Virus record (IMG/VR): IMGVR_UViG_3300035703_000009
Location: 124,001-188,000 of that record
Length of the DNA: 64,000 nucleotides
Strand: one strand, 5' to 3'
Part shown: in pieces, positions 23,723 through 64,000 of the stretch
How positions within the stretch are numbered: the stretch's first letter is position 1
Layout of the letters: the number at the start of each line of letters is the position of its first letter
Notes under the pieces: generated by a model
Told to the model about the DNA's origin: nothing
The model's input: only the letters and a program-made list of their open reading frames with translations
Database searches by the model: none
Program-made: the position numbers and the translations under genes

Positions 23723-23759
23723 TAGTGTTGGTTATTTTTAAAGGTACAAATAGTCCCAG

Positions 23760-24197
23760 TGGACCCGTCGGGAATCGAACCCGAGTCTTGCTCAGCAAAT
23801 CCAGAGGACTCATTCACAGGCTTAGTCAGTTTTACGACTCTGACAACCGTTTTGGTTTTCTGGGTAGTTTTTATGGTGAGTTTCCTTCTCACCCTCATGA
23901 CGGCTTTCTACATACCTACACGTCTATCCGTAGTGTCTTTGTCAACGATTTCGCCCCCTATATGTCGTTGATCTGGAACGCCCGTGGTCAGCCACAGCTA
24001 TTAAGGGAGCCCTTCCAAGCTTGCACATTTGCTTTCGAAGGGTAAGTGCGACCCATTGCTTACGCGGCTATCGCCATTTCAGCACCAACAAAAGAGTTGC
24101 CGTTTAAATGATTCGATAGGGGATTAAAGAGCTTCCATCTAGCTCTGCCTGCATCATCTCAAAGAACCTAGCTGCCAATCAATTCCTGGTCGAGCCC
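23760..24197 (-). ncRNA. ssrA: tmRNA; tag peptide (A)GNSFVGAEMAIAA* at 24101..24060
   Basis: 5' GGGCTCG pairs with 3' CGGGTCC-A including the G3:U alanine determinant; T-arm TCGGG-TTCGATT-CCCGA; internal tag frame ends in AA-stop. Confidence 0.92.
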
Positions 24198-53936: not shown

Positions 53937-55853
53937 ATGCAGTATAGATCAGGCGTAGAGATCCCAAAGGTCTCATTTTCAGACATAGATTACACCCAAA
54001 TAAATTCCAACGCGTTCTTTATTGGGTTCGACCTCGATAACTTGGGCAAGCTCTCAAAGATCGACGAGTTTGGTAACATCACCGCGATCGAGGGAGCCGG
54101 CGGAGGCAGCTCAATTATGATTGAGGACAGTGGGTTAGGCTCAACTGTTCGTATCAATAACTGTAATTCGGCAAGCGACTGCTTTTCAACAGTCAGTGGA
54201 GGTTGCTGTAATACTATTAATGCTTTTACAACATGTTCAGGCTATATCGTATTTGGAAATACAATCGGTGGTGGTCAATGTAATACAATAAATTCAAATA
54301 GTGCTTATTATGGAAATGCTGGTGGTGTTACAATAGCAGGTGGTTTTAACAATACAACATGTTCAAACTATTATGGGTTTAATACCATAGGTGGCGGTTG
54401 TAACAACACGGCATCGGGTGATGCTTCCACAGTGGGTGGCGGGGTTAACAACCCGGCATCGGGTGATGCTTCCACAGTGGGTGGCGGGGTTAACAACACG
54501 GCATCGGGTTCTATTTCCACAGTGGGTGGCGGGGTTAACAACACGGCATCGGGTGATGCTTCCACAGTGGGTGGCGGTTTAAACAACACGGCATCGAGTG
54601 CTTGTTCCACAGTTGGTGGCGGATATAACAACACAGCATCGGGTTATTGTTTTTCCACAGTAAGTGGTGGATATTGTAATGCCGCATCATGCGATAATTC
54701 AACCGTAAGTGGCGGTAGAAACAACACGGCATCGGGTTCTATTTCCACAGTGGGTGGCGGTAGAGAAAACACGGCATTAAGTAATTATTCCACAATCGGT
54801 GGCGGTGAGAGCAATACCGCATCGGGTTATCATTCCACAGTTGGTGGCGGTATAGGCAACACAGCATCATGTAATTCTTCCACAGTTGGTGGCGGAGATA
54901 GCAATACGGCATCAAATTGTACTTCAACAGTAAGTGGTGGTTATGGTAATAATGCATCAAGTAATGGTTCAACAGTAAGTGGTGGGGCTGGTAATACAGC
55001 ATCATGTGATTATTCAACAGTAGGTGGTGGTAGAAATAATACTTCATCTGGTTATAATACAACAGTAAGTGGTGGTTATAATAATACTGCGTCAGGTTGT
55101 AGTTCAACAGTAAGTGGTGGTTATGGTAATACTATTAATGCTTTTACAACATGTTCAGGTTACAGTGTATATGGAAATACCATAGGTGGTGGTCAACAAA
55201 ATACAATAAATTCAAATAGTGCTTGTTACGGAAATGCTGGTGGCGTTACAATAGCTGGTGGTTTTAACAATACAACATGTTCAGGTTTTTATGGGTTTAA
55301 TACCATAGGTGGCGGTTGTAATAATATCGCATCGGCTAACTTTTCAACAGTAGGCGGCGGTAGACAAAACACGGCATCGGGTAGTTATTCCACAGTTAGT
55401 GGAGGATATGTCAACACGGCATCGAGTAATTTTTCCACAGTCGGTGGCGGTCAGCTTAACACGGTATCGGGTGGTTGTTCCACAGTCGGTGGCGGTTTAG
55501 GCAACACGGCATCGGGTTCTATTTCCACAGTCGGTGGCGGTTTAGGCAACACGGCATCGGGTTCTATTTCCACAGTAGGTGGCGGTAGACAAAACACGGC
55601 ATCGGGTTGCTGTTCCACAGTTAGTGGCGGTTTTTGCAACACGGCATCGGGTTGTAATTCATCGATCTTAGGCGGAACTACCAATAATACTAACTCATGT
55701 AGCTGTGCAATGATTGTTGGTAGCAATATCACTGCAAACCGTGCTTGTGCAACTTTCGTCAACAACTTATCCATCATGAATATTCCAACTTCATCTGCTG
55801 GTTTACCTGCAGGCGCGATCTATAGTGATAGTTGTGTTCTAAAAATAGTGTAA
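53937..55853 (+). CDS. Fibre-like protein with 14-aa GGGxxNTASxxxSTV repeats, Cys-rich
   Basis: Tandem 42-bp repeats; N-terminal domain shared with 55860; C-terminal motif shared with the 16904 gene. Confidence 0.8.
   Translation: MQYRSGVEIPKVSFSDIDYTQINSNAFFIGFDLDNLGKLSKIDEFGNITAIEGAGGGSSIMIEDSGLGSTVRINNCNSASDCFSTVSGGCCNTINAFTTCSGYIVFGNTIGGGQCNTINSNSAYYGNAGGVTIAGGFNNTTCSNYYGFNTIGGGCNNTASGDASTVGGGVNNPASGDASTVGGGVNNTASGSISTVGGGVNNTASGDASTVGGGLNNTASSACSTVGGGYNNTASGYCFSTVSGGYCNAASCDNSTVSGGRNNTASGSISTVGGGRENTALSNYSTIGGGESNTASGYHSTVGGGIGNTASCNSSTVGGGDSNTASNCTSTVSGGYGNNASSNGSTVSGGAGNTASCDYSTVGGGRNNTSSGYNTTVSGGYNNTASGCSSTVSGGYGNTINAFTTCSGYSVYGNTIGGGQQNTINSNSACYGNAGGVTIAGGFNNTTCSGFYGFNTIGGGCNNIASANFSTVGGGRQNTASGSYSTVSGGYVNTASSNFSTVGGGQLNTVSGGCSTVGGGLGNTASGSISTVGGGLGNTASGSISTVGGGRQNTASGCCSTVSGGFCNTASGCNSSILGGTTNNTNSCSCAMIVGSNITANRACATFVNNLSIMNIPTSSAGLPAGAIYSDSCVLKIV
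54722..54850 (+). repeat. 129-bp block identical (inverted) to 18849..18977
   Basis: Base-by-base comparison of the two fibre genes. Confidence 0.85.
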
Positions 55854-55859
55854 TAATAA

Positions 55860-57251
55860 ATGTACAAATCAGGCATAGAAATTCCAAAAGTAGACTTTTC
55901 AATCATCAGCTGTAACCGGATTGCGGCTGGCAGCTACTTTATCGGTTTCAACCTTGGAAACAGCGGTAAGCTCTCAAAGATGGACTGTAACGGCATCATC
56001 ACCGTGATCGAGGGAGCCGGCTCTTCGATCTATGAAGAGGACTCTGGTGTTAGCTCAGCCCTGCGTACGGGTGCAGGTTCGGTTCCGAGTGACTATGCGA
56101 CGGTGAGCGGCGGTCAGTGCAACCTAATCACGGCTCCAAGCGGCGGAGCTACTAGCTGGCTAGTGACTCAGAACCCGGCGAATCCAATCGATTATAGTGA
56201 CGCGGTCACCCAAGACTCGACCACTGGAGCCGGTGTAGGCGCAGCTATCCTCATCGACATTGTTGCCGGTACAACATCAGTAAATCTAACGTTCAATCCA
56301 GGCCAAGGCTATCAGGTAGGAGATCTCATCACGATATTAGGCTCGCAAGTCGGCGGCTCAGACGGAGTAGATGACGTCATCCTGCAAGTCGATTCAGTAT
56401 TTTCAGGCAGTTCGTTTATTGGATCCGGCTGCTCAAACTCAATCGCTGGCTTGGGATCGTCAATCGTTGGTGGAGTGGGTAACACAATCGACCAAGGCGG
56501 TTATGGTTCGTTCATTGGAGGTGGTAACGATAACTTAGTGTGTGCTCCGTATGGAACTGTCGCAGGCGGGCTTAATAACGTATCGACTAACGTAGGATCG
56601 TCAATAGTTGGTGGAGCATTTAACACTACTTCTGAAACAGGTTCAACCGTAGGTGGCGGGGTTAACAACACGTCATCGGGTTTTTTTTCAACAGTAGGTG
56701 GCGGTGAGAGCAATACCGCATCGTGTTGTTTTTCAACAGTAGGTGGCGGAGGTGCCAACACGGCATCGGGTTATTATTCCACAGTTAGTGGCGGCGGAAG
56801 CAACACGGCATCAAATCAATATTCCACAGTTAGTGGTGGTAGACAAAACACGGCATTATGTTGTTATTCCACAGTTAGTGGCGGTTTTTGCAACACGGCA
56901 TCGAGTTATTCTTCCACAGTGGGTGGCGGTAAATGCAACACGTCATCATGTGATTCTTCCACAGTAAGTGGCGGATTTAGCAACACAGCATCGGGTTATT
57001 ATTCCACAGTTAGTGGCGGATGTAGAAACACGGCATCGGGTAGTTATTCCGGCATATTAGGTGGTCAAGGTAACAATATTTGTGGTTGTAACTGTAGCTT
57101 CATCGTTGGTAGCAATATATGTGCTGACCGTACATGTACAACGTTTGTTAACACATTATCAGTAAAGAACATGCCGACTGAATCTGATCTGCCTTTACCT
57201 AGCGGAGTGATCTATCTTTGCACAGGTGATGGGACGCTAAGAATCGCCTAA
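55860..57251 (+). CDS. Fibre-like repeat protein, paralog
   Basis: Same N-terminus (SG.EIPKV.F...FIGF.L.N.GKLSK.D), GQGYQVGD insert module and 14-aa repeats. Confidence 0.8.
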   Translation: MYKSGIEIPKVDFSIISCNRIAAGSYFIGFNLGNSGKLSKMDCNGIITVIEGAGSSIYEEDSGVSSALRTGAGSVPSDYATVSGGQCNLITAPSGGATSWLVTQNPANPIDYSDAVTQDSTTGAGVGAAILIDIVAGTTSVNLTFNPGQGYQVGDLITILGSQVGGSDGVDDVILQVDSVFSGSSFIGSGCSNSIAGLGSSIVGGVGNTIDQGGYGSFIGGGNDNLVCAPYGTVAGGLNNVSTNVGSSIVGGAFNTTSETGSTVGGGVNNTSSGFFSTVGGGESNTASCCFSTVGGGGANTASGYYSTVSGGGSNTASNQYSTVSGGRQNTALCCYSTVSGGFCNTASSYSSTVGGGKCNTSSCDSSTVSGGFSNTASGYYSTVSGGCRNTASGSYSGILGGQGNNICGCNCSFIVGSNICADRTCTTFVNTLSVKNMPTESDLPLPSGVIYLCTGDGTLRIA

Positions 57252-57287: not shown

Positions 57288-57605
57288 ATGAGCACATTCA
57301 ACACAATACACGTATTTGGATTTGGAAAGATCCAGGTGGTAAAAGAAAACGGCGGAACGCTAGACTCTTCTGCAGTAACTTCCTTAGCTACTTTTGTTGA
57401 CCACATCAAGGGATTTAAACCAGCTGACGTCACACTAAGCGACTATCACGTGATCCACATTTTCAATAATTTTGACATCAAGTACTTGGGTAAGAATGAT
57501 GGTAATTTCAAGGTAAAGAATCAATTTAGCGTAAAGCTTAGCGACGTAGACGCAACTATCTACAATAACTTCGTGAACGAGGTAATTTCCATGTTACCGG
57601 CTTAA
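57288..57605 (+). CDS. Small protein, paralog of 53401..53724
   Basis: Clear sequence similarity to the paralog. Confidence 0.7.
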   Translation: MSTFNTIHVFGFGKIQVVKENGGTLDSSAVTSLATFVDHIKGFKPADVTLSDYHVIHIFNNFDIKYLGKNDGNFKVKNQFSVKLSDVDATIYNNFVNEVISMLPA

Positions 57606-58420
57606 TAGTACTTAAACTCGTCGTAGAACCACTTGTAATTGGTCTTAATCCAGTTACTAGCATATGTTCCTAACACTTCCTTGTAATTTTCCTTTAGAGG
57701 TTCGATTTTCGTACGAATCTGGTGATCGCCATAGATGCCATACACCTCATCATCCTCTTGAGTTATCTGCTCAACTCGATCGAAGTCATGCTCATAATAA
57801 GGCACGCCTAAATACTCGTATACTCTAGCCATTTCTTTGGCAGGGTTGCTAGTAAATTCCTCAAACTTAATGAATAGCATCTTCTTGTTGATTCCCTCCT
57901 TAAAGATCTGCTGCAATCGTTCGACGGCAAGCCCAACAGGCTGACTCTGTGCCCAAATGTCGATGCGTTTCTCGGTGGTGGTGCCTTGCATCGCTGCGTG
58001 GTTCACTATTCCTGAGTCCTTATCCTGGTTCTTTCTAAAGTTCTTCTCCATAGATGCAAAGACTCCGCGTAGGTCTCGTACCATGCACACTATCTTGGGA
58101 TCCGGATAGAAGGAATTAAGGAAGCCATAGTGAATGCCCCAACCGCGGCTCTTGTCCAAGACGTATGGTTTATCAGTTATCTCATTGAAGAAACCAGTTA
58201 ATCCAGCATTGCAGAATCCTGCAAATCCCTTGCGCATCAGGGATGAATCCTGGGCCTTAAATTCAGGCGAGTTAGTGTAATTATTACGTGCAGCGTAGAC
58301 TAACTCTAGGAGGCCTGAAGTAGGCGTCACATAGAATTTTGGGTTCTGACCCATCACGTTCTGGAAAAGGGTGGAACCTGCACGTGGCAGGCTCGCTTGA
58401 AAAAAGATCTTTTGTACCAT
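57602..58420 (-). CDS. Sulfotransferase
   Basis: SLPRAGSTL 5'-PSB loop; MVRD...S 3'-PB motif; IKFEEF..NP. Confidence 0.85.
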   Translation of the reverse strand: MVQKIFFQASLPRAGSTLFQNVMGQNPKFYVTPTSGLLELVYAARNNYTNSPEFKAQDSSLMRKGFAGFCNAGLTGFFNEITDKPYVLDKSRGWGIHYGFLNSFYPDPKIVCMVRDLRGVFASMEKNFRKNQDKDSGIVNHAAMQGTTTEKRIDIWAQSQPVGLAVERLQQIFKEGINKKMLFIKFEEFTSNPAKEMARVYEYLGVPYYEHDFDRVEQITQEDDEVYGIYGDHQIRTKIEPLKENYKEVLGTYASNWIKTNYKWFYDEFKYY

Positions 58421-59304
58421 TAGATTTGATTTATTGAGTTGAGCACCTCTGAGCTGTCAAAGATGTTAAGGTCGGTGAGCGGACACTCATGCAAGTTGCC
58501 GTGGAATCCATAGTCGAACAAGTAGCTGTCGGGCAGCTTAAAGTCCTCTGGTAGGTTCGCGCAGACGTTGTTGTGTATCGAGTAACCAAATATCTTCGGT
58601 GAGGTACCGATCCATAATACTGTAGAAGGTAGCTTTAAGGCAGCGGCTGCGTGCTGCAAGCATGAGTCAATGAGCACTCTCTTGCTAGAGTAAAGCAGCA
58701 AAGAAAATAGCTCCATATTAGACATTGGTGCAAATATCGCTTCTGCTCCAGGAACGGCTTGTCCCTGCTCTCTACACACTTGGATGATGTGATACTGACC
58801 TGAAAAAGCCTTCACTATCTCTTCGACTAGAGAAAACGGCATGTCTCGAGTCCATGAATATGGATATGGTTGGTCTTTGATCGGGCCGCCATTGGATTGG
58901 ATGACCATGATCGGTCGATTGCGAGTCCATTTAGTGTAGCCATACTGACGCTGCCGAATGTTGAACACCAGATCTGGGCTCTCGCCTTCGTATTTTAAGT
59001 CGTATAGCTTACACCAGTTCTCGACAAGAGATAACTGTTTGTGCACGTGCTCGGTGGTAAAATAGGGCTCGTGCTTAAAGATCAAGGTGTCCTGATCCTT
59101 AATGTAGTCCTGATAAAAGTATGGAGTGGCACCGATGCGATACACTCGATCAATGAATCCCAGATTCAAAAAGATCTCTGGATAGGCACACACCACAATG
59201 AGCTTACGATCGGGGTGGTTATTTTTGATGCACTGGGCAACGGCAGTTGCCGCTACATGCTTACCGAGTCCTCCCTCGATGTGAAACAAGCAGTATTTGT
59301 TCAT
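58420..59304 (-). CDS. Glycosyltransferase, GT9 (heptosyltransferase)-like
   Basis: GGLGK...AT and LIDSCLQHAAAAL..PSTVLW. Confidence 0.75.
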   Translation of the reverse strand: MNKYCLFHIEGGLGKHVAATAVAQCIKNNHPDRKLIVVCAYPEIFLNLGFIDRVYRIGATPYFYQDYIKDQDTLIFKHEPYFTTEHVHKQLSLVENWCKLYDLKYEGESPDLVFNIRQRQYGYTKWTRNRPIMVIQSNGGPIKDQPYPYSWTRDMPFSLVEEIVKAFSGQYHIIQVCREQGQAVPGAEAIFAPMSNMELFSLLLYSSKRVLIDSCLQHAAAALKLPSTVLWIGTSPKIFGYSIHNNVCANLPEDFKLPDSYLFDYGFHGNLHECPLTDLNIFDSSEVLNSINQI

Positions 59305-59711
59305 GGGTTAGCTTTATTTTTTAGCAGCTCAATCAATAGATTGTGAGCATTTATATCTACTAAGGATTTCCATTCAGTTTCTCCAGATAGCACCTGTCTA
59401 CGAATTTCTGTCGCAGAGATATTAGCGGTTACTTGGTCTACCTGGATCTCCTTTACTTCATAACCGACCCCTCTACCGTAATTCACGCTGGCTATGTCAG
59501 GTATGATTATCACCTTGACGAGAGGGTTTCCTCGATAAATCTCTTCCCATAGCCGCTTGACTTCCTCTGCAGATAGCGGGTTCTTGTCGTCTGGTTCAAC
59601 GTCGCGAACTGCAATTAGCACTGGCAGCCCCCGGTCTAGGTATTCTTTAAAGATTGTCTGGTGGCCTTTGTGCGGAGACTGATAGCGACCGATAAAAAGG
59701 TTGTATACCAT
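59301..59711 (-). CDS. HIGH-family nucleotidyltransferase (cytidylyl/adenylyltransferase)
   Basis: FIGRYQSPHKGH and ISATEIR motifs. Confidence 0.8.
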   Translation of the reverse strand: MVYNLFIGRYQSPHKGHQTIFKEYLDRGLPVLIAVRDVEPDDKNPLSAEEVKRLWEEIYRGNPLVKVIIIPDIASVNYGRGVGYEVKEIQVDQVTANISATEIRRQVLSGETEWKSLVDINAHNLLIELLKNKANP

Positions 59712-59717
59712 AATTAT

Positions 59718-59963
59718 TTAAGTTTTTATTTTCTTGACACCAAAGGGTATAGCGTACCAAATTCGTTCGTGTATGTAATATGTGATAATCTTAACGAAAA
59801 AATCGGCTGTTCCTATTGATAATCCTAAGTTTATATCATGGGTGACTAATGTTGCAATTAGAGAGGTGATACTTGACGAATATAGTCGATAAGTAATAGA
59901 CTTTAGTAGATGGCGTTTATGGCTAATCCATGTGTCATGGTTAGAAGATAGTTGACTATTCAT
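59718..59963 (-). CDS. DUF2061-like small membrane protein
   Basis: RHLLKSITYR...K...YYIHERIW. Confidence 0.75.
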   Translation of the reverse strand: MNSQLSSNHDTWISHKRHLLKSITYRLYSSSITSLIATLVTHDINLGLSIGTADFFVKIITYYIHERIWYAIPFGVKKIKT

Positions 59964-60384
59964 TAGTAAGGTAATCTACTATTTTTTGAATGCACTCGTC
60001 CAACTTAAAGTCAGTGTTGACTGCTAAGTAGTCGTGTTGAGGCACTGCATAGTCTTTCACAAAGAAGTCTTCGCGACCTCTAATTTGATTGGTGTTGAGG
60101 AAGATCTCAAACACTCTTGCCGAACTCTTTAGCTCTTCGCGTAAGTCTTCGTATGGACTGACCATTGCTAGTATGGCGACATGGTTTTTTGCAGAAAGGA
60201 ATCGCGCTATGTTATATGCATTGGTTAGGTTGCGACGACGACCTTCCTCACTATAGTCCTTGTTCTTAAAGATTTCTCGGAGCTCGTCACCGTCTATTCT
60301 GATGGAGTTAGGTATCAGTTTTTCAAGTTCTCGTGCGATTGTAGTCTTGCCTGAGCCAGGCTGGCCAATCAAGTGAATTATCAT
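59956..60384 (-). CDS. cysC: Adenylyl-sulfate (APS) kinase
   Basis: GQPGSGKTT, IDGDELR, YSEEGRRRN and VSPY...RE. Confidence 0.85.
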   Translation of the reverse strand: MIIHLIGQPGSGKTTIARELEKLIPNSIRIDGDELREIFKNKDYSEEGRRRNLTNAYNIARFLSAKNHVAILAMVSPYEDLREELKSSARVFEIFLNTNQIRGREDFFVKDYAVPQHDYLAVNTDFKLDECIQKIVDYLTNE

Positions 60385-60478
60385 GTAAGTTAAACTTTTT
60401 TAGAGGCGAGAGTATATAGTTATACTGTATGTGAATCTTGAAGTTTCATCACCTAACTCAATAAATAAACTTAACAAA

Positions 60479-60703
60479 ATGTCTATAAAAAACCTAGCTA
60501 CGATGTTGACCGCACTCCTCTTATTTTGTCTACACGCTCTATATAGAGCGTTCGAATTGAAGTTCGGTTGGTTTTTTGTGAACGGTAATAAGCGCGAAGC
60601 ATGGCAGAGATACTTAGAGAAAAAATACGGCGCACAAGCAAATAAAGATCAATCGTTTAGACAGTTTTTTCGCCAACAATTATCTAGGTTCAAGAAAAAG
60701 TAG
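60479..60703 (+). CDS. Small membrane-associated protein
   Basis: Likely ATG at 60479 after ATAAATA; N-terminal hydrophobic helix. Confidence 0.5.
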   Translation: MSIKNLATMLTALLLFCLHALYRAFELKFGWFFVNGNKREAWQRYLEKKYGAQANKDQSFRQFFRQQLSRFKKK

Positions 60704-60789
60704 TACATTAGCTCCATAATTATTTTTTACAAAACTTAAAACTTTTTCCAAAAGTTAGTATAAATAACTAAAAATTGAAACAACCTTCA

Positions 60790-60876
60790 ATGAAAGCTCA
60801 CAAAAATATGATTACGTTAGATTTCAGCCTTCCAGTTGAGGTGGGGACAGATCGTGAGTGTTTATTTAGGAGTTGA
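60790..60876 (+). CDS. Candidate leader peptide MKAHKNMITLDFSLPVEVGTDRECLFRS
   Basis: 28-codon ORF between a promoter motif and a terminator; contains sequence complementary to the terminator stem. Confidence 0.4.
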   Translation: MKAHKNMITLDFSLPVEVGTDRECLFRS

Positions 60877-60898
60877 GATTTATCAGCATAAGATATTG

Positions 60899-60930
60899 AA
60901 AACCTCAACCCATAAAGTTGAGGTTTTTTT
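60899..60930 (+). terminator. Intrinsic terminator/attenuator directly upstream of the tRNA cluster
   Basis: AAAACCTCAAC-ccataaa-GTTGAGGTTTT followed by a T-run. Confidence 0.75.
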
Positions 60931-60944
60931 GTTTTTAATAACTC

Positions 60945-61016
60945 GGTCCATTGGTGTAGTGGCTAACATTCATCCCTGTCACGGATGCGCCGCGAGTTCG
61001 ATTCTCGCATGGACCG
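60945..61016 (+). tRNA. tRNA-Asp(GTC)
   Basis: Full cloverleaf: GGTCCAT/ATGGACC, CATCC-CTGTCAC-GGATG, GCGAG-TTCGATT-CTCGC. Confidence 0.92.
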
Positions 61017-61028
61017 CAGAAACATTTT

Positions 61029-61040
61029 GTTCTTTGAAAA
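61029..61040 (+). promoter_or_regulatory. boxA-like antitermination motif GTTCTTTGAAAA
   Basis: Identical 12-mer also at 63742, both directly before structured RNAs. Confidence 0.5.
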
Positions 61041-61043
61041 AAT

Positions 61044-61116
61044 GCCGAGGTAGCTCAGTTGGGAGAGCATGAGACTCATAAACTCAAGGTCAGCAGTTCG
61101 ATCCTGCTTCTCGGTA
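61044..61116 (+). tRNA. tRNA-Met/Ile2 (CAT)
   Basis: GCCGAGG/TCTCGGT acceptor, GCTC/GAGC D-stem, CTCATAA loop, AGCAG-TTCGATC-CTGCT. Confidence 0.88.
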
Positions 61117-61129
61117 CGAAAGATAAAAT

Positions 61130-61203
61130 TGCGGGGTAGAGAAGCGGTCATCTCGGAAGTCTCATAAGCTTCAGATCGGAGGTTCGAATCCTCCCTCACG
61201 CAA
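61130..61203 (+). tRNA. Initiator-like tRNA-Met(CAT), atypical
   Basis: TGCGGGG 5' end like fMet tRNAs; bulged base in the 3' acceptor strand (CTCACGCA); anticodon stem lacks the three G-C pairs. Confidence 0.7.
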
Positions 61204-61207
61204 CTAA

Positions 61208-61361
61208 GTCAGTAGCAACGTAAAAGTTACTTCGAAATCCATCATAAGGAAGGGGTCGGTGGTTCGAATCCATCTCTCGGCACTATATTAAAAACTCATG
61301 CCGAGATAGCTCAGTGGTCTAGAGCACTTTAAAGAAAAACACTTTTGCACTTTTCTCTGAC
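61208..61361 (+). ncRNA. Y-RNA (YrlA)-like RNA A: scaffold plus permuted tRNA (CAT loop, T arm, closed acceptor, D arm)
   Basis: GTCAG/CTGAC and GTAAAAGT/ACTTTTGC stems; GGTGG-TTCGAAT-CCATC; TCTCGGCA/TGCCGAGA; GCTC/GAGC. Confidence 0.8.
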
Positions 61362-61401
61362 AAAATTTTAAAAGTTCGATCACGTGTAGTACTGTATCAA
61401 C

Positions 61402-61770
61402 ATGAATGCACTAACCGACCGTCTGCTGGAACTGCCAGCCACAATCGCAGAAAATCAACGTCAGATCTTAGATTTGAGCGGTGACCTGCAACTGGTCTCA
61501 AACAACATCGTTGAGATTGAGACCAAGATAAAACTTTCTATTGCCGCAAAAGTAGATGATGCTGGCAAGAAAGTTTACTCGAATGCCGACGCAAGGGAAG
61601 CTGCCTTTGCAGAAGCTGCTGCTGACGACTTTGAGCTCATTGAGCTTAAGGACGCTCGTGACAAGAAGGAGAAGAGCCTTCAGTTGCTAAAGATCGAGTA
61701 TGAAAAGCTTAGCAACGAACAGCGAAACATCCGTGCAACGTTATATTTTCTTGCCGGAAAGAGCGAATAA
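61402..61770 (+). CDS. Coiled-coil hypothetical protein
   Basis: 122 aa, helical hairpin with KVYSNADARE turn. Confidence 0.65.
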   Translation: MNALTDRLLELPATIAENQRQILDLSGDLQLVSNNIVEIETKIKLSIAAKVDDAGKKVYSNADAREAAFAEAAADDFELIELKDARDKKEKSLQLLKIEYEKLSNEQRNIRATLYFLAGKSE

Positions 61771-61863
61771 AAAGTTTTCAATAAACTGAAAATGTTACGA
61801 TAAACCAAGTAAGTTAATCAAACACAAGTAAGTTTAAAAAAATAAAAACCTTGTACTAAAATT

Positions 61864-63597
61864 ATGGCAAAGTTCAGAAACCAAAATCTTCGTAGCACGC
61901 TAGCTGGTATGCAGCCTGATGCGAAGTTGGTTGAAGCAGCAAAGCTGCCGAAGCCAGACACCAAGAATCGTCAAGGAAACGACGCGTACTCACTCGACAA
62001 GTGGCTCCGTCTCTTGACAATGCTCAACACTCTCAAGCTTGAGAGCCAGTTCTATCGTTCTGAGAACGAGACGATGCGCGAGCTCAAAGCGTTAGTCGAT
62101 GAGTGTGCTAAGGAGGACGCTTACTTTGTTGCTCAAGCAATCGTGTACTCACGTTGCGTAGGTGAAGGAATGCGTTCAGTAAACCACTTGGCTGCAAGCT
62201 ACCTAGCGCCACACTGCGCTGGTCAAGAATGGGCAAAGCGTTTCTACTCACTGTGGAACAAGAAGACCCAATCTGGCGGTACCCTCTTCAGACCTGACGA
62301 CATGTCAGAGATCGTTGCATGCTTTTCAGCAATGAATAAGACTGCAGTGACCAACGCGATGAAGAAGGGCTTCAAGGAAGCTCTCGAAAAGATGGACGCG
62401 TACTCGCTCCTCAAGTACAAGAGCTCTCTCGTTGACGTGATCAACCTCGTTCACCCTGACGCTAAGACAGCGAAGGCAAAGGTTGAGATCTCAGCTGACT
62501 CGTACTTGGCCAAGCTACGTGAACTTGAAAAGGCAACTAAGGACAAGACAAAGAGCAAGGCTCTACTCGAAAAGATTAAGCTCAACGAAAGTGCCAGCGG
62601 AACCGTCAAGGTTTCTGCACTGGATGCGATCATGCTGGGTCTATCAGCGTCAGCTGACACCTGGGAGGTAGCACAATCCGATGCAGGCCAAGAGGTTGCA
62701 AAGGCAGTGAAGGAAGGCAAGCTGACCGAGACTCAGGCTGCGGAAGTCCTCAAGGAAGCAAAGGCTGAAAACTGGGACGCCCTCTTAACCGAAGGCAAGC
62801 TCGGAGTTCTGGCCGCTCTACGAAACATCCGTAACATCGTGAAGACCGCGTCAAAGGGAACAACGGTAGACAAGCTCTGCGCATTGCTCTCAGACGGCGA
62901 GGCTATCCGTAAGGGTAAGATCATGCCGTATCAAATTGACATGGCTCACGAAGTGGTCAATGCTGAGTTCAGCAACGTCGACTCTCGTAAGATTGCGCAA
63001 GCTCTCTTAAAGGGTTACGAAGCTGCAGTGCCTAACCTCGCTGAAGCCCTACCAGGCAGAACTCTCGTGATGGTTGACTTCTCTGGCTCAATGTCGACCA
63101 TGGTTGTTGACCCTAACCGCAAGACCAGCTACCGCAGCTCTTGCATGGATAAGGCAGCCCTGATCGCAGCAACAGTCGCAAAGGCAACCAACGCAGACAT
63201 CATCCGCTTCGGCTCCTCTGCAGAATACGTCAGCTGGAATGCAAATTCCGATGTGTTCTCAATCGCAAAGGCAATGAAGCGTGACATGGGAGGTACCAGC
63301 CTAGCCTCTGCATGGATGGCGGCACAAAGATCTGGACGTAAGTACGATCGAGTGTTCATTCTATCAGACAACGAATGTAACAGTGGCTCAAGCTACAAGG
63401 CGTACGAAAGCTACACCAAGGCATGCGGAAGCCCATACGTTTACTCAGTTGACCTGGCAGCGTACGGAACGACCCAACTCGCAGGAGACAAGGTTCGCTT
63501 CTACTACGGCTATGGTTACTCAATGTTCGATGACATCGCGAAGAGCGAGTTCAACCCGAACTACCACCTCGAAAAGGTGAAGAAGATCGTGATCTAA
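61864..63597 (+). CDS. rsr: Ro60/Rsr TROVE-domain RNA-binding protein with vWA domain
   Basis: N..G..AY, YSLLKY, L.DVINLVHP, TWE, ALRNIRNI; MIDAS DFSGS...GGT...LSDNE. Confidence 0.9.
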   Translation: MAKFRNQNLRSTLAGMQPDAKLVEAAKLPKPDTKNRQGNDAYSLDKWLRLLTMLNTLKLESQFYRSENETMRELKALVDECAKEDAYFVAQAIVYSRCVGEGMRSVNHLAASYLAPHCAGQEWAKRFYSLWNKKTQSGGTLFRPDDMSEIVACFSAMNKTAVTNAMKKGFKEALEKMDAYSLLKYKSSLVDVINLVHPDAKTAKAKVEISADSYLAKLRELEKATKDKTKSKALLEKIKLNESASGTVKVSALDAIMLGLSASADTWEVAQSDAGQEVAKAVKEGKLTETQAAEVLKEAKAENWDALLTEGKLGVLAALRNIRNIVKTASKGTTVDKLCALLSDGEAIRKGKIMPYQIDMAHEVVNAEFSNVDSRKIAQALLKGYEAAVPNLAEALPGRTLVMVDFSGSMSTMVVDPNRKTSYRSSCMDKAALIAATVAKATNADIIRFGSSAEYVSWNANSDVFSIAKAMKRDMGGTSLASAWMAAQRSGRKYDRVFILSDNECNSGSSYKAYESYTKACGSPYVYSVDLAAYGTTQLAGDKVRFYYGYGYSMFDDIAKSEFNPNYHLEKVKKIVI

Positions 63598-63611
63598 TCA
63601 GTCACGGCACT

Positions 63612-63641
63612 GGCTAGGAAGAGGGTGACCTCTTCCTAGCC
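63612..63641 (+). other. Perfect 13-bp hairpin with GTGA (GNRA) loop after rsr
   Basis: GGCTAGGAAGAGG-GTGA-CCTCTTCCTAGCC with no U-tract. Confidence 0.7.
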
Positions 63642-63649
63642 GCTAAAAA

Positions 63650-63730
63650 ACCGAGTGGCAAGTTAAGAGTTACTTCTAACATCAATTTGAAATGACTACA
63701 CAAGCACACTCTTAGCAACATTACCTCGGT
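63650..63730 (+). ncRNA. Y-RNA-like RNA B: scaffold with short non-tRNA insert
   Basis: ACCGAG/CTCGGT, TGGCAA, GTTAAGAGT/ACTCTTAGC, TACTTC...ACAC. Confidence 0.7.
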
Positions 63731-63741
63731 AAATTTTTAAA

Positions 63742-63753
63742 GTTCTTTGAAAA
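63742..63753 (+). promoter_or_regulatory. boxA-like motif GTTCTTTGAAAA
   Basis: Second copy, directly before RNA C. Confidence 0.5.
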
Positions 63754-63759
63754 ATAAAA

Positions 63760-63885
63760 ATCAGGTAGCAACGTAAGGGTTACTTCTAGCTCAATTGGTC
63801 GAGCAATTTTCTGCAAAAAAATGGGTTGTGGGTTCGATCCCCACGAAGCGGCGAAAGCCGTACACCCTTGCAACTTTCTCCTGAT
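63760..63885 (+). ncRNA. Y-RNA-like RNA C: scaffold plus unpermuted tRNA body (D arm, GCA anticodon arm, T arm) and a GNRA hairpin
   Basis: ATCAGG/CCTGAT, GTAAGGGT/ACCCTTGC; GCTC/GAGC; ATTTT-CTGCAAA-AAAAT; GTGGG-TTCGATC-CCCAC; CGGC-GAAA-GCCG. Confidence 0.8.
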
Positions 63886-63896
63886 AACTTAAATTA

Positions 63897-64000
63897 AAGC
63901 GTAGCAAGACTAGAGTTACTTCGCATATTGGTTCGAATCCAATATTTGGCACCTGCCAAATTAGACAAATGGTTAAGTCGACGGTCTCATAAACTGTTTT
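63897..64000 (+). ncRNA. Y-RNA-like RNA D (truncated): scaffold plus permuted tRNA (T arm, closed acceptor, D arm, CAT anticodon arm)
   Basis: TAGCAAG...GAGTTACTTC; ATTGG-TTCGAAT-CCAAT; ATTTGGC-ACCT-GCCAAAT; GAC/GTC; ACGGT-CTCATAA-ACTGT. Confidence 0.75.

Follow-up and report, generated by a model that had tools for sequence, protein, structure and literature searches.

Leader-peptide transcription attenuators control enterobacterial amino-acid operons (trpL, hisL, thrL, leuL, pheL, and the ilv leaders) as well as pheST. In these systems a promoter is followed by a short translated ORF and by mutually exclusive antiterminator and terminator hairpins. The stop codon is placed so that a terminating ribosome masks the antiterminator strand, and the regulatory codons, a run of one to three amino acids, are tied to what the operon supplies. 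T-box riboswitches also use tRNA status to decide between a terminator and an antiterminator upstream of genes of the translation apparatus. However, they are not translated and bind uncharged tRNA directly, through a specifier loop and a conserved T-box motif. Large clusters of tRNA genes are found in phages such as T4, T5, mycobacteriophages of cluster C1 and Vibrio schizoT4 phages, where they are thought to compensate for codon usage or to replace host tRNAs cleaved by anticodon nucleases (PMC10264068; PMC11464382). Transcription of these arrays is treated as promoter-driven, and full-text literature searches found no leader-peptide attenuator described for them.

Here, an element at the head of the tRNA array of a large lake phage is compared with these systems. 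Like the enterobacterial attenuators, it combines a promoter-like motif, a short ORF, an antiterminator strand overlapping the stop codon and a terminator-like hairpin. In contrast to them, the genes behind it are tRNA genes (with Ro60 and a Y-RNA-like RNA) rather than genes for biosynthetic enzymes or synthetases. The leaders of its family carry one or a few codons for up to 18 amino acids, and the element is phage-encoded, repeated several times within one tRNA array and devoid of an SD sequence. No similarity to the Rfam His, Thr, Trp, Leu or Phe leader families was detected, either at the gathering threshold or at E up to 10. Likewise, there was no T-box hit in 60400-64000, even at E up to 10, and the codon signal described below is frame-specific. 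The comparative evidence suggests that the phage probably makes its own tRNAs only when translation runs short of them.

Genomic context and anatomy of the element

The window, that is, the whole 64,000-nt stretch of DNA that was analyzed, comprises bases 124001-188000 of a single-contig genome of 207,110 bp with 42% G+C (IMG/VR record IMGVR_UViG_3300035703_000009), assembled from subsurface or lake metagenomes. The phage is myovirus-like, with a baseplate wedge protein, a terminase and an endolysin. Its baseplate protein is most similar to those of phages infecting Bacteroidota (Lak, Flavobacterium, Tenacibaculum, and Chryseobacterium phages), plus Sphingomonas phage PAU. Genes have A-rich, G-poor upstream regions and almost none has a Shine-Dalgarno sequence (9 of 148 long ORFs), which fits a Bacteroidota host. 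All 35 tRNA genes lie on the + strand between genome positions 184945 and 193629, and tRNA-Asp at window position 60945 is the first of them. Ro60 lies inside the array. Upstream of the array, the window contains two large Gly/Ser/Thr-rich proteins with UspA1-type adhesin repeats and many Cys residues (53937-57251, + strand), probably tail fibers or other host-recognition proteins. These are followed by a five-gene cluster (57602-60384, - strand) suggesting sulfation or glycan modification: a sulfotransferase, a weak glycosyltransferase-9-like protein, a cytidylyltransferase-like protein, a DUF2061 membrane protein and an APS-kinase-like P-loop protein. The features of the element are as follows:

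60739-60744 (+), AAACTT box, a -35-like upstream promoter element lying 14 nt before TATAAATA
60758-60767 (+), GTATAAATAA, a conserved promoter-like -10 motif that looks like a T4-type late promoter (GTATAAATA at 60758-60766)
60790-60876 (+), leader ORF of 28 codons plus TGA (60874-60876), encoding MKAHKNMITLDFSLPVEVGTDRECLFRS
60835-60842 (+), GTTGAGGT, first copy of the terminator's 3′ arm, not conserved
60871-60877 (+), AGTTGAG, the conserved antiterminator strand (segment A), overlapping the stop codon, with GTTGAG at 60872-60877
60898-60909 (+), terminator 5′ arm (segment B), GAAAACCTCAAC
60917-60936 (+), terminator 3′ arm (segment C, 60917-60928) together with the T tract
60945-61202 (+), tRNA-Asp(GTC), tRNA-Met(CAT) and tRNA-Met(CAT), the first three of the 35 tRNAs
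61203-63853 (+), probable remainder of the transcription unit inside the window: a Y-RNA-like/tRNA-like RNA, a 122-aa ORF (61402-61770), Ro60 (TROVE plus vWA, 61864-63597) and tRNA-Cys (63779-63853)

The original prediction described a promoter-like motif, a 28-codon ORF, a terminator and two upstream copies of the terminator's 3′ arm, and each of these is present at the position it gave. The hairpin (60898-60928) has 12 pairs and a 7-nt loop. Its T tract begins inside the 3′ arm and runs to 60930, followed by G and five more T. It is the strongest of the seven terminator-like sites in 58000-64000. In addition, 13 comparable hairpin-plus-T sites lie a few to about 30 nt after ordinary genes, so such structures are the normal stop signals of this phage. 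Only 14 nt (60931-60944) separate the main T tract from tRNA-Asp, leaving no room for a promoter. The leader RNA folds better than all 200 shuffles (z = -3.95), and the terminator is intact in the minimum-energy structure. The ORF has no SD sequence, like 139 of 148 long genes in this genome.

The tRNAs were called with ARAGORN and Rfam, and Ro60 was identified by Pfam and PHROG hits. No + strand terminator lies between 60928 and the next module at genome position 189138. Together with leader codons for tRNAs that lie beyond Ro60 (see below), this suggests that the Y-RNA-like RNA, the 122-aa ORF and Ro60 are in the same unit. Interestingly, repeated Y-RNA-like elements flank Ro60 (61203-61360 and 63854-64000) and also occur in many related loci. 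They consist of a conserved helix (GTAGCAA, a few bases, then GTTACTTCG) joined to a permuted tRNA-like half, with the T arm first and then the acceptor 5′ strand and D arm. No Rfam family reaches threshold for them, and the partial tRNA hit at 63955-64000 belongs to one of these elements. A blastn search of 60400-61900 against GenBank phages hit only tRNA genes. Just upstream of the promoter motif, a small conserved ORF (60431-60703, + strand) without a family hit shares the core GWFF(V/I)NGNKREAW with the related locus L030. No terminator separates it from the leader promoter.

Promoter motifs

Six of the seven GTATAAATA copies in the genome are intergenic and upstream of genes, although about 93% of the genome is ORF by a crude map. 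Two copies stand before the baseplate/terminase operon and before an operon that includes a virion structural protein. A phage-encoded tmRNA gene (23757-24197, - strand; Rfam RF00023, 51.8 bits) lies between two divergent structural operons that each carry GTATAAATA. Three copies stand in the tRNA region, each with an AAACTT box 14-15 nt upstream. The third of these (genome 190416-190646) is followed by a 31-codon ORF, but no terminator precedes tRNA-Met, so it could be an unattenuated internal promoter or another small RNA. The motif therefore behaves like a promoter shared with the structural (late-type) genes. The octamer TATAAATA, present in only 9 copies, is identical to that of T4-type late promoters, which are also used upstream of structural genes, but whether it acts as a late promoter remains open. 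Here, however, it comes with an upstream AAACTT box, which T4 late promoters lack, and the phage is related to Bacteroidota-infecting myoviruses rather than to T4.

A second motif, GTTCTTTGA, may be an internal promoter or a processing signal. The sequence GTTCTTTG(A/G) lies 4-29 nt before four RNA genes in the array (window 61030-61036 and 63743-63749; genome 190636 and 191108): tRNA-Met twice, tRNA-Leu, and the Y-RNA-like stretch before tRNA-Cys. It was found at only one other intergenic site in the genome and is not conserved at the homologous place in L030.

Orthologous and paralogous modules

Relatives were fetched with Ro60, giving 32 IMG/VR loci and 45 metagenome loci (L numbers hereafter). 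The element is present in eight distinct versions: the window, L030, L157, L160, L190, L005, L006, and L038. In all of these it lies directly before the first tRNA after it, and where enough upstream sequence exists that tRNA is the first of the array. The distance from the promoter motif to the end of the terminator is 173-174 nt in the six versions measured, and the ORF is always 27-28 codons. The conserved islands are the promoter motif (TATAAATAA is invariant in 8 orthologues), the start codon, AAATAT at codons 5-7, the stop-codon AGTTGAG (invariant in 7 of 8, AGTTAAG in the eighth) and the terminator, whereas the rest varies. Near-identical strains in three lake metagenomes differ within the ORF only by two third-position synonymous changes, 60822 T>C (GAT to GAC, Asp) and 60861 T>C (TGT to TGC, Cys). 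They also have one T fewer in the T tract.

The original prediction described both upstream copies of the terminator arm as complementary to the 5′ arm, but only the stop-codon copy is conserved. The stronger copy at 60835-60842 is a perfect 8-nt complement of ACCTCAAC, but it is specific to this genome. In orthologues only GAGGT (codons Glu-Val) is kept, or nothing at all, and in the MFE fold this copy pairs locally with 60821-60828. It was rejected as the main antiterminator because it is not conserved.

The element is also one member of a family rather than a one-off. Ten further paralogous modules, one in this genome and nine in relatives, share the architecture but have different terminator stems. 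They consist of an AAACTT box, a GTATAAATAA or ATATATAA motif, an ORF of 19-51 codons that often begins M-K-N-x-x-N-I, a terminator and then a tRNA 8-64 nt later. The AAACTT box, at a similar spacing, precedes the GTATAAATA or ATATATAA motif of most orthologous and paralogous modules. The second module of this genome (module B, 188976-189172) lies about 1 kb past the end of the window, before tRNA-Val. Its 40-codon ORF contains 17 of the 17 non-Met amino-acid types of the 27 tRNAs behind it, and its stem is CCTCGAAC/GTTCGAGG, with GTTCGA in the last codons of the ORF. Together, the two modules appear to split the 35 tRNAs into two regulated units.

By strict terminator criteria, more distant Ro60-bearing contigs (53-67% identity: L013, L021, L023-L032) showed no such modules, so the family appears confined to one clade or else uses hairpins that this filter misses. 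An IMG/VR scan with the loose promoter pattern GAAACTTT, a gap of 10-16 nt and then ATATATAA was unspecific: of the loci returned, only two had three or more tRNAs and none had a module. None of the five cultured relatives checked has the module either. Flavobacterium phage MaF61, Tenacibaculum phage PTm1 and Chryseobacterium phage MA9V-1 have no tRNAs, while Sphingomonas phage PAU and Tenacibaculum phage pT24 have small arrays 90-117 nt after a gene.

Antiterminator pairing

When each RNA is folded only up to the terminator loop, before the 3′ arm exists, CUCAAC of the 5′ arm pairs with the stop-codon GUUGAG at probability 0.97-1.0 in all six homologues folded. Across ten modules with different stems, the 62 nt upstream of each terminator were paired with the loop-proximal 8 nt of the 5′ arms. 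Pairing with the module's own arm averages -10.2 kcal/mol, against -5.3 ± 1.9 kcal/mol for other modules' arms. The own arm is the best partner in 9 of 10 modules, and 0 of 200,000 permutations reach the observed sum. This is covariation between the upstream segment (A) and the stem.

The geometry is constant. Segment A lies in the last 0-18 nt of the ORF, or across the stop codon in the window, segment B begins 20-32 nt after the stop (24 nt after the first base of the stop codon in the window), and the terminator ends 8-64 nt before the first tRNA. Assuming a typical ribosome footprint, a ribosome at the stop codon would therefore cover A but not the terminator. The conserved A:B helix is only 6-7 bp, much weaker than the 12-bp terminator, and full-length RNAs prefer the terminator by 3-21 kcal/mol across modules and by 11.5 kcal/mol in the window. 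Antitermination must therefore be kinetic. Segment A also pairs with the 5′ part of its own ORF more strongly than with those of other modules (-6.3 against -4.6 kcal/mol, p = 0.001). This pairing (a “1:2” helix) would hold A in untranslated RNA, but it is weak in the window.

Correspondence between leader codons and downstream tRNAs

For eleven module groups, each leader was compared with the tRNAs lying between its terminator and the next module. Of 368 leader residues (start codon excluded), 278 belong to amino acids whose tRNA is encoded in that stretch, against 210 ± 13.5 for permuted leader/operon pairings (0 of 200,000 permutations reach the observed value). The in-frame share is 75.5%, against 55% and 54% in the other two frames of the same DNA. 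Furthermore, 116 of 118 tRNA amino-acid types (Met excluded) have at least one codon in their own leader, against 95.6 ± 4.0 for permuted pairings. The module groups were defined after the pattern was first seen, a concern that the permutation tests, the frame controls and a later metagenome set reduce but do not remove. The match survives other operon definitions (p = 0.0017 and 0.0006) and holds in the additional metagenome modules (176 of 303 against 141.6 ± 11, p = 0.0006). It is concentrated in the middle of the leaders (84%) and lowest in the last five codons, which form segment A (45%).

In L009, the leader reads HTTTSSSTSTSSCDEDT and stands before tRNAs Ser, Ser, Thr, Cys, His, Thr, Ser, Glu, and Asp. 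In L001, a 33-residue leader contains all 16 amino acids of the 16 tRNAs behind it, and no Leu. In L001:1732, the codons TCA, AGA, ATA, TTA, and CCN stand before tRNAs with anticodons TGA, TCT, TAT, TAA, and TGG. Orthologues also differ in this respect. The window-type leaders examined in detail (window, L030, L157, L160) stand before tRNA-Asp, Met, Gly, and Glu and carry Asp, Glu, and Gly codons, and L190, a short contig showing only Asp and Met tRNAs, carries Asp, Met, and Gly codons. In contrast, L005-type leaders stand before Glu, Met, Arg, Gly, Ala, and Leu and have no Asp codon but several Arg, Ala, Gly, and Leu codons.

In the window alone the match is weak. Its operon, up to the next module, holds tRNAs Asp, Met, Met, Cys, Gly, Met, Glu and an odd His-like tRNA (genome 188857-188932), called by ARAGORN with anticodon ATG at an unusual position (29), which may be a tRNA-like element rather than a working tRNA. 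The leader holds GAT twice (codons 11 and 21), GAG twice, GGG, TGT, CAC, and an internal ATG (codon 7, besides the start). This amounts to 8 of 27 residues against a background of 17% (p = 0.08), although all five non-Met types are covered, and its weight comes from membership of the family. The original prediction, which pointed to early ATG and GAT codons, captured only part of the match, because the Glu, Gly, Cys, and His codons correspond to tRNAs lying beyond Ro60.

Proposed mechanism and alternatives

These data support, with reasonable though not full confidence, a ribosome-mediated transcription attenuator at the head of a phage tRNA operon, as originally predicted. In this model, transcription starts at the GTATAAATA promoter and the leader is translated while RNA polymerase approaches the terminator. 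If the ribosome reaches the stop codon it covers A, B pairs with C, and transcription ends 14 nt before tRNA-Asp. If the ribosome lags or stalls at a codon in the middle of the leader, A stays free and captures the loop-proximal half of B as it emerges. The terminator hairpin then cannot nucleate, and polymerase reads into the tRNAs, the Y-RNA-like RNA, Ro60 and the following tRNAs. This is the logic of the classical trp- and his-type attenuators, applied as a negative feedback in which the tRNA supply is switched on when any of those tRNAs is limiting. All 20 runs containing the sequence are DNA metagenomes, and the host, including whether it couples transcription to translation, is unknown. 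Translation of the leader, the sign and kinetics of the switch and its physiological trigger, including the damage to host tRNAs proposed in the original prediction, are thus inferred. In L005-type orthologues a -10-like GTATTATAA lies between the terminator and the first tRNA, so a second promoter is possible there, and the GTTCTTTGA motif could be an internal promoter.

A first alternative, considered unlikely, is that the element is a translated but general attenuator, reporting overall ribosome availability or elongation speed, for example after host shut-off, rather than the supply of particular tRNAs. The anatomy would be the same, 19 of 27 codons in the window's leader have tRNAs that are not in its own operon, and module B's leader contains nearly all amino acids. 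However, across the family the match is operon-specific and nearly complete, as illustrated by the Ser/Thr/Cys/His/Asp/Glu leader placed before exactly those tRNAs in L009.

It is similarly doubtful that the element is an independent micro-gene or small RNA with its own promoter and an ordinary terminator, the tRNAs being made constitutively by leaky read-through or from other promoters and the upstream copy of the terminator arm having no regulatory role. The conserved N-terminal pattern of the peptides (M-K-N-x-x-N-I), which often end in R-S or I-S, could point to a functional peptide. The terminator is thermodynamically dominant, and the L005-type orthologues carry the -10-like motif after it. 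On the other hand, only 6-17 nt separate the terminator from the first tRNA in the window, L030, module B, L005:4728, and L008, which leaves no room for a promoter. Moreover, the complement of the 5′ arm covaries with the stem, and peptide composition tracks the downstream tRNA set rather than being conserved.

Least likely is a non-translational switch in which a protein (for example Ro60 or a phage factor) or an uncharged tRNA binds the leader and the ORF is incidental: the A/B/C structure does not in itself require a ribosome and the weak antiterminator might need a stabilizing factor, but no T-box or other leader family matches at E up to 10, the codon match is frame-specific, ORF length is conserved, strain variants are synonymous, and A always lies within ribosome reach of the stop codon with B just outside it.

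Implications for phage tRNA arrays

A bolder interpretation, judged slightly more likely than not, is that a clade of freshwater phages autoregulates its tRNA operons with “checklist” leader peptides. A ribosome stall at any listed codon, whether from codon-usage mismatch, host shut-off or tRNA cleavage by host defense nucleases, would switch on exactly the operon that can relieve it. This would be the first leader-peptide attenuation known to control tRNA genes themselves, acting as a built-in sensor of the host tRNA pool, and Ro60 and Y-RNA-like RNAs would be co-induced with the tRNAs. It would extend textbook attenuation to RNA genes rather than enzymes, to a many-amino-acid leader rather than a run of one, and to hosts without Shine-Dalgarno sequences. 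Such leaders could also serve as compact, programmable sensors of the supply of individual tRNAs.

Why phages carry tRNAs has been argued for decades, with codon compensation set against the replacement of tRNAs destroyed by host defenses, and how these genes are regulated has hardly been studied. An attenuator whose codons list the operon's own tRNAs would show that the phage measures tRNA sufficiency codon by codon and responds, the leader stating which tRNAs the phage expects to run short of. It would place Ro60 and Y-RNA-like RNAs under the same control as the tRNAs, which would hint that they belong to the same response to tRNA or translation stress.
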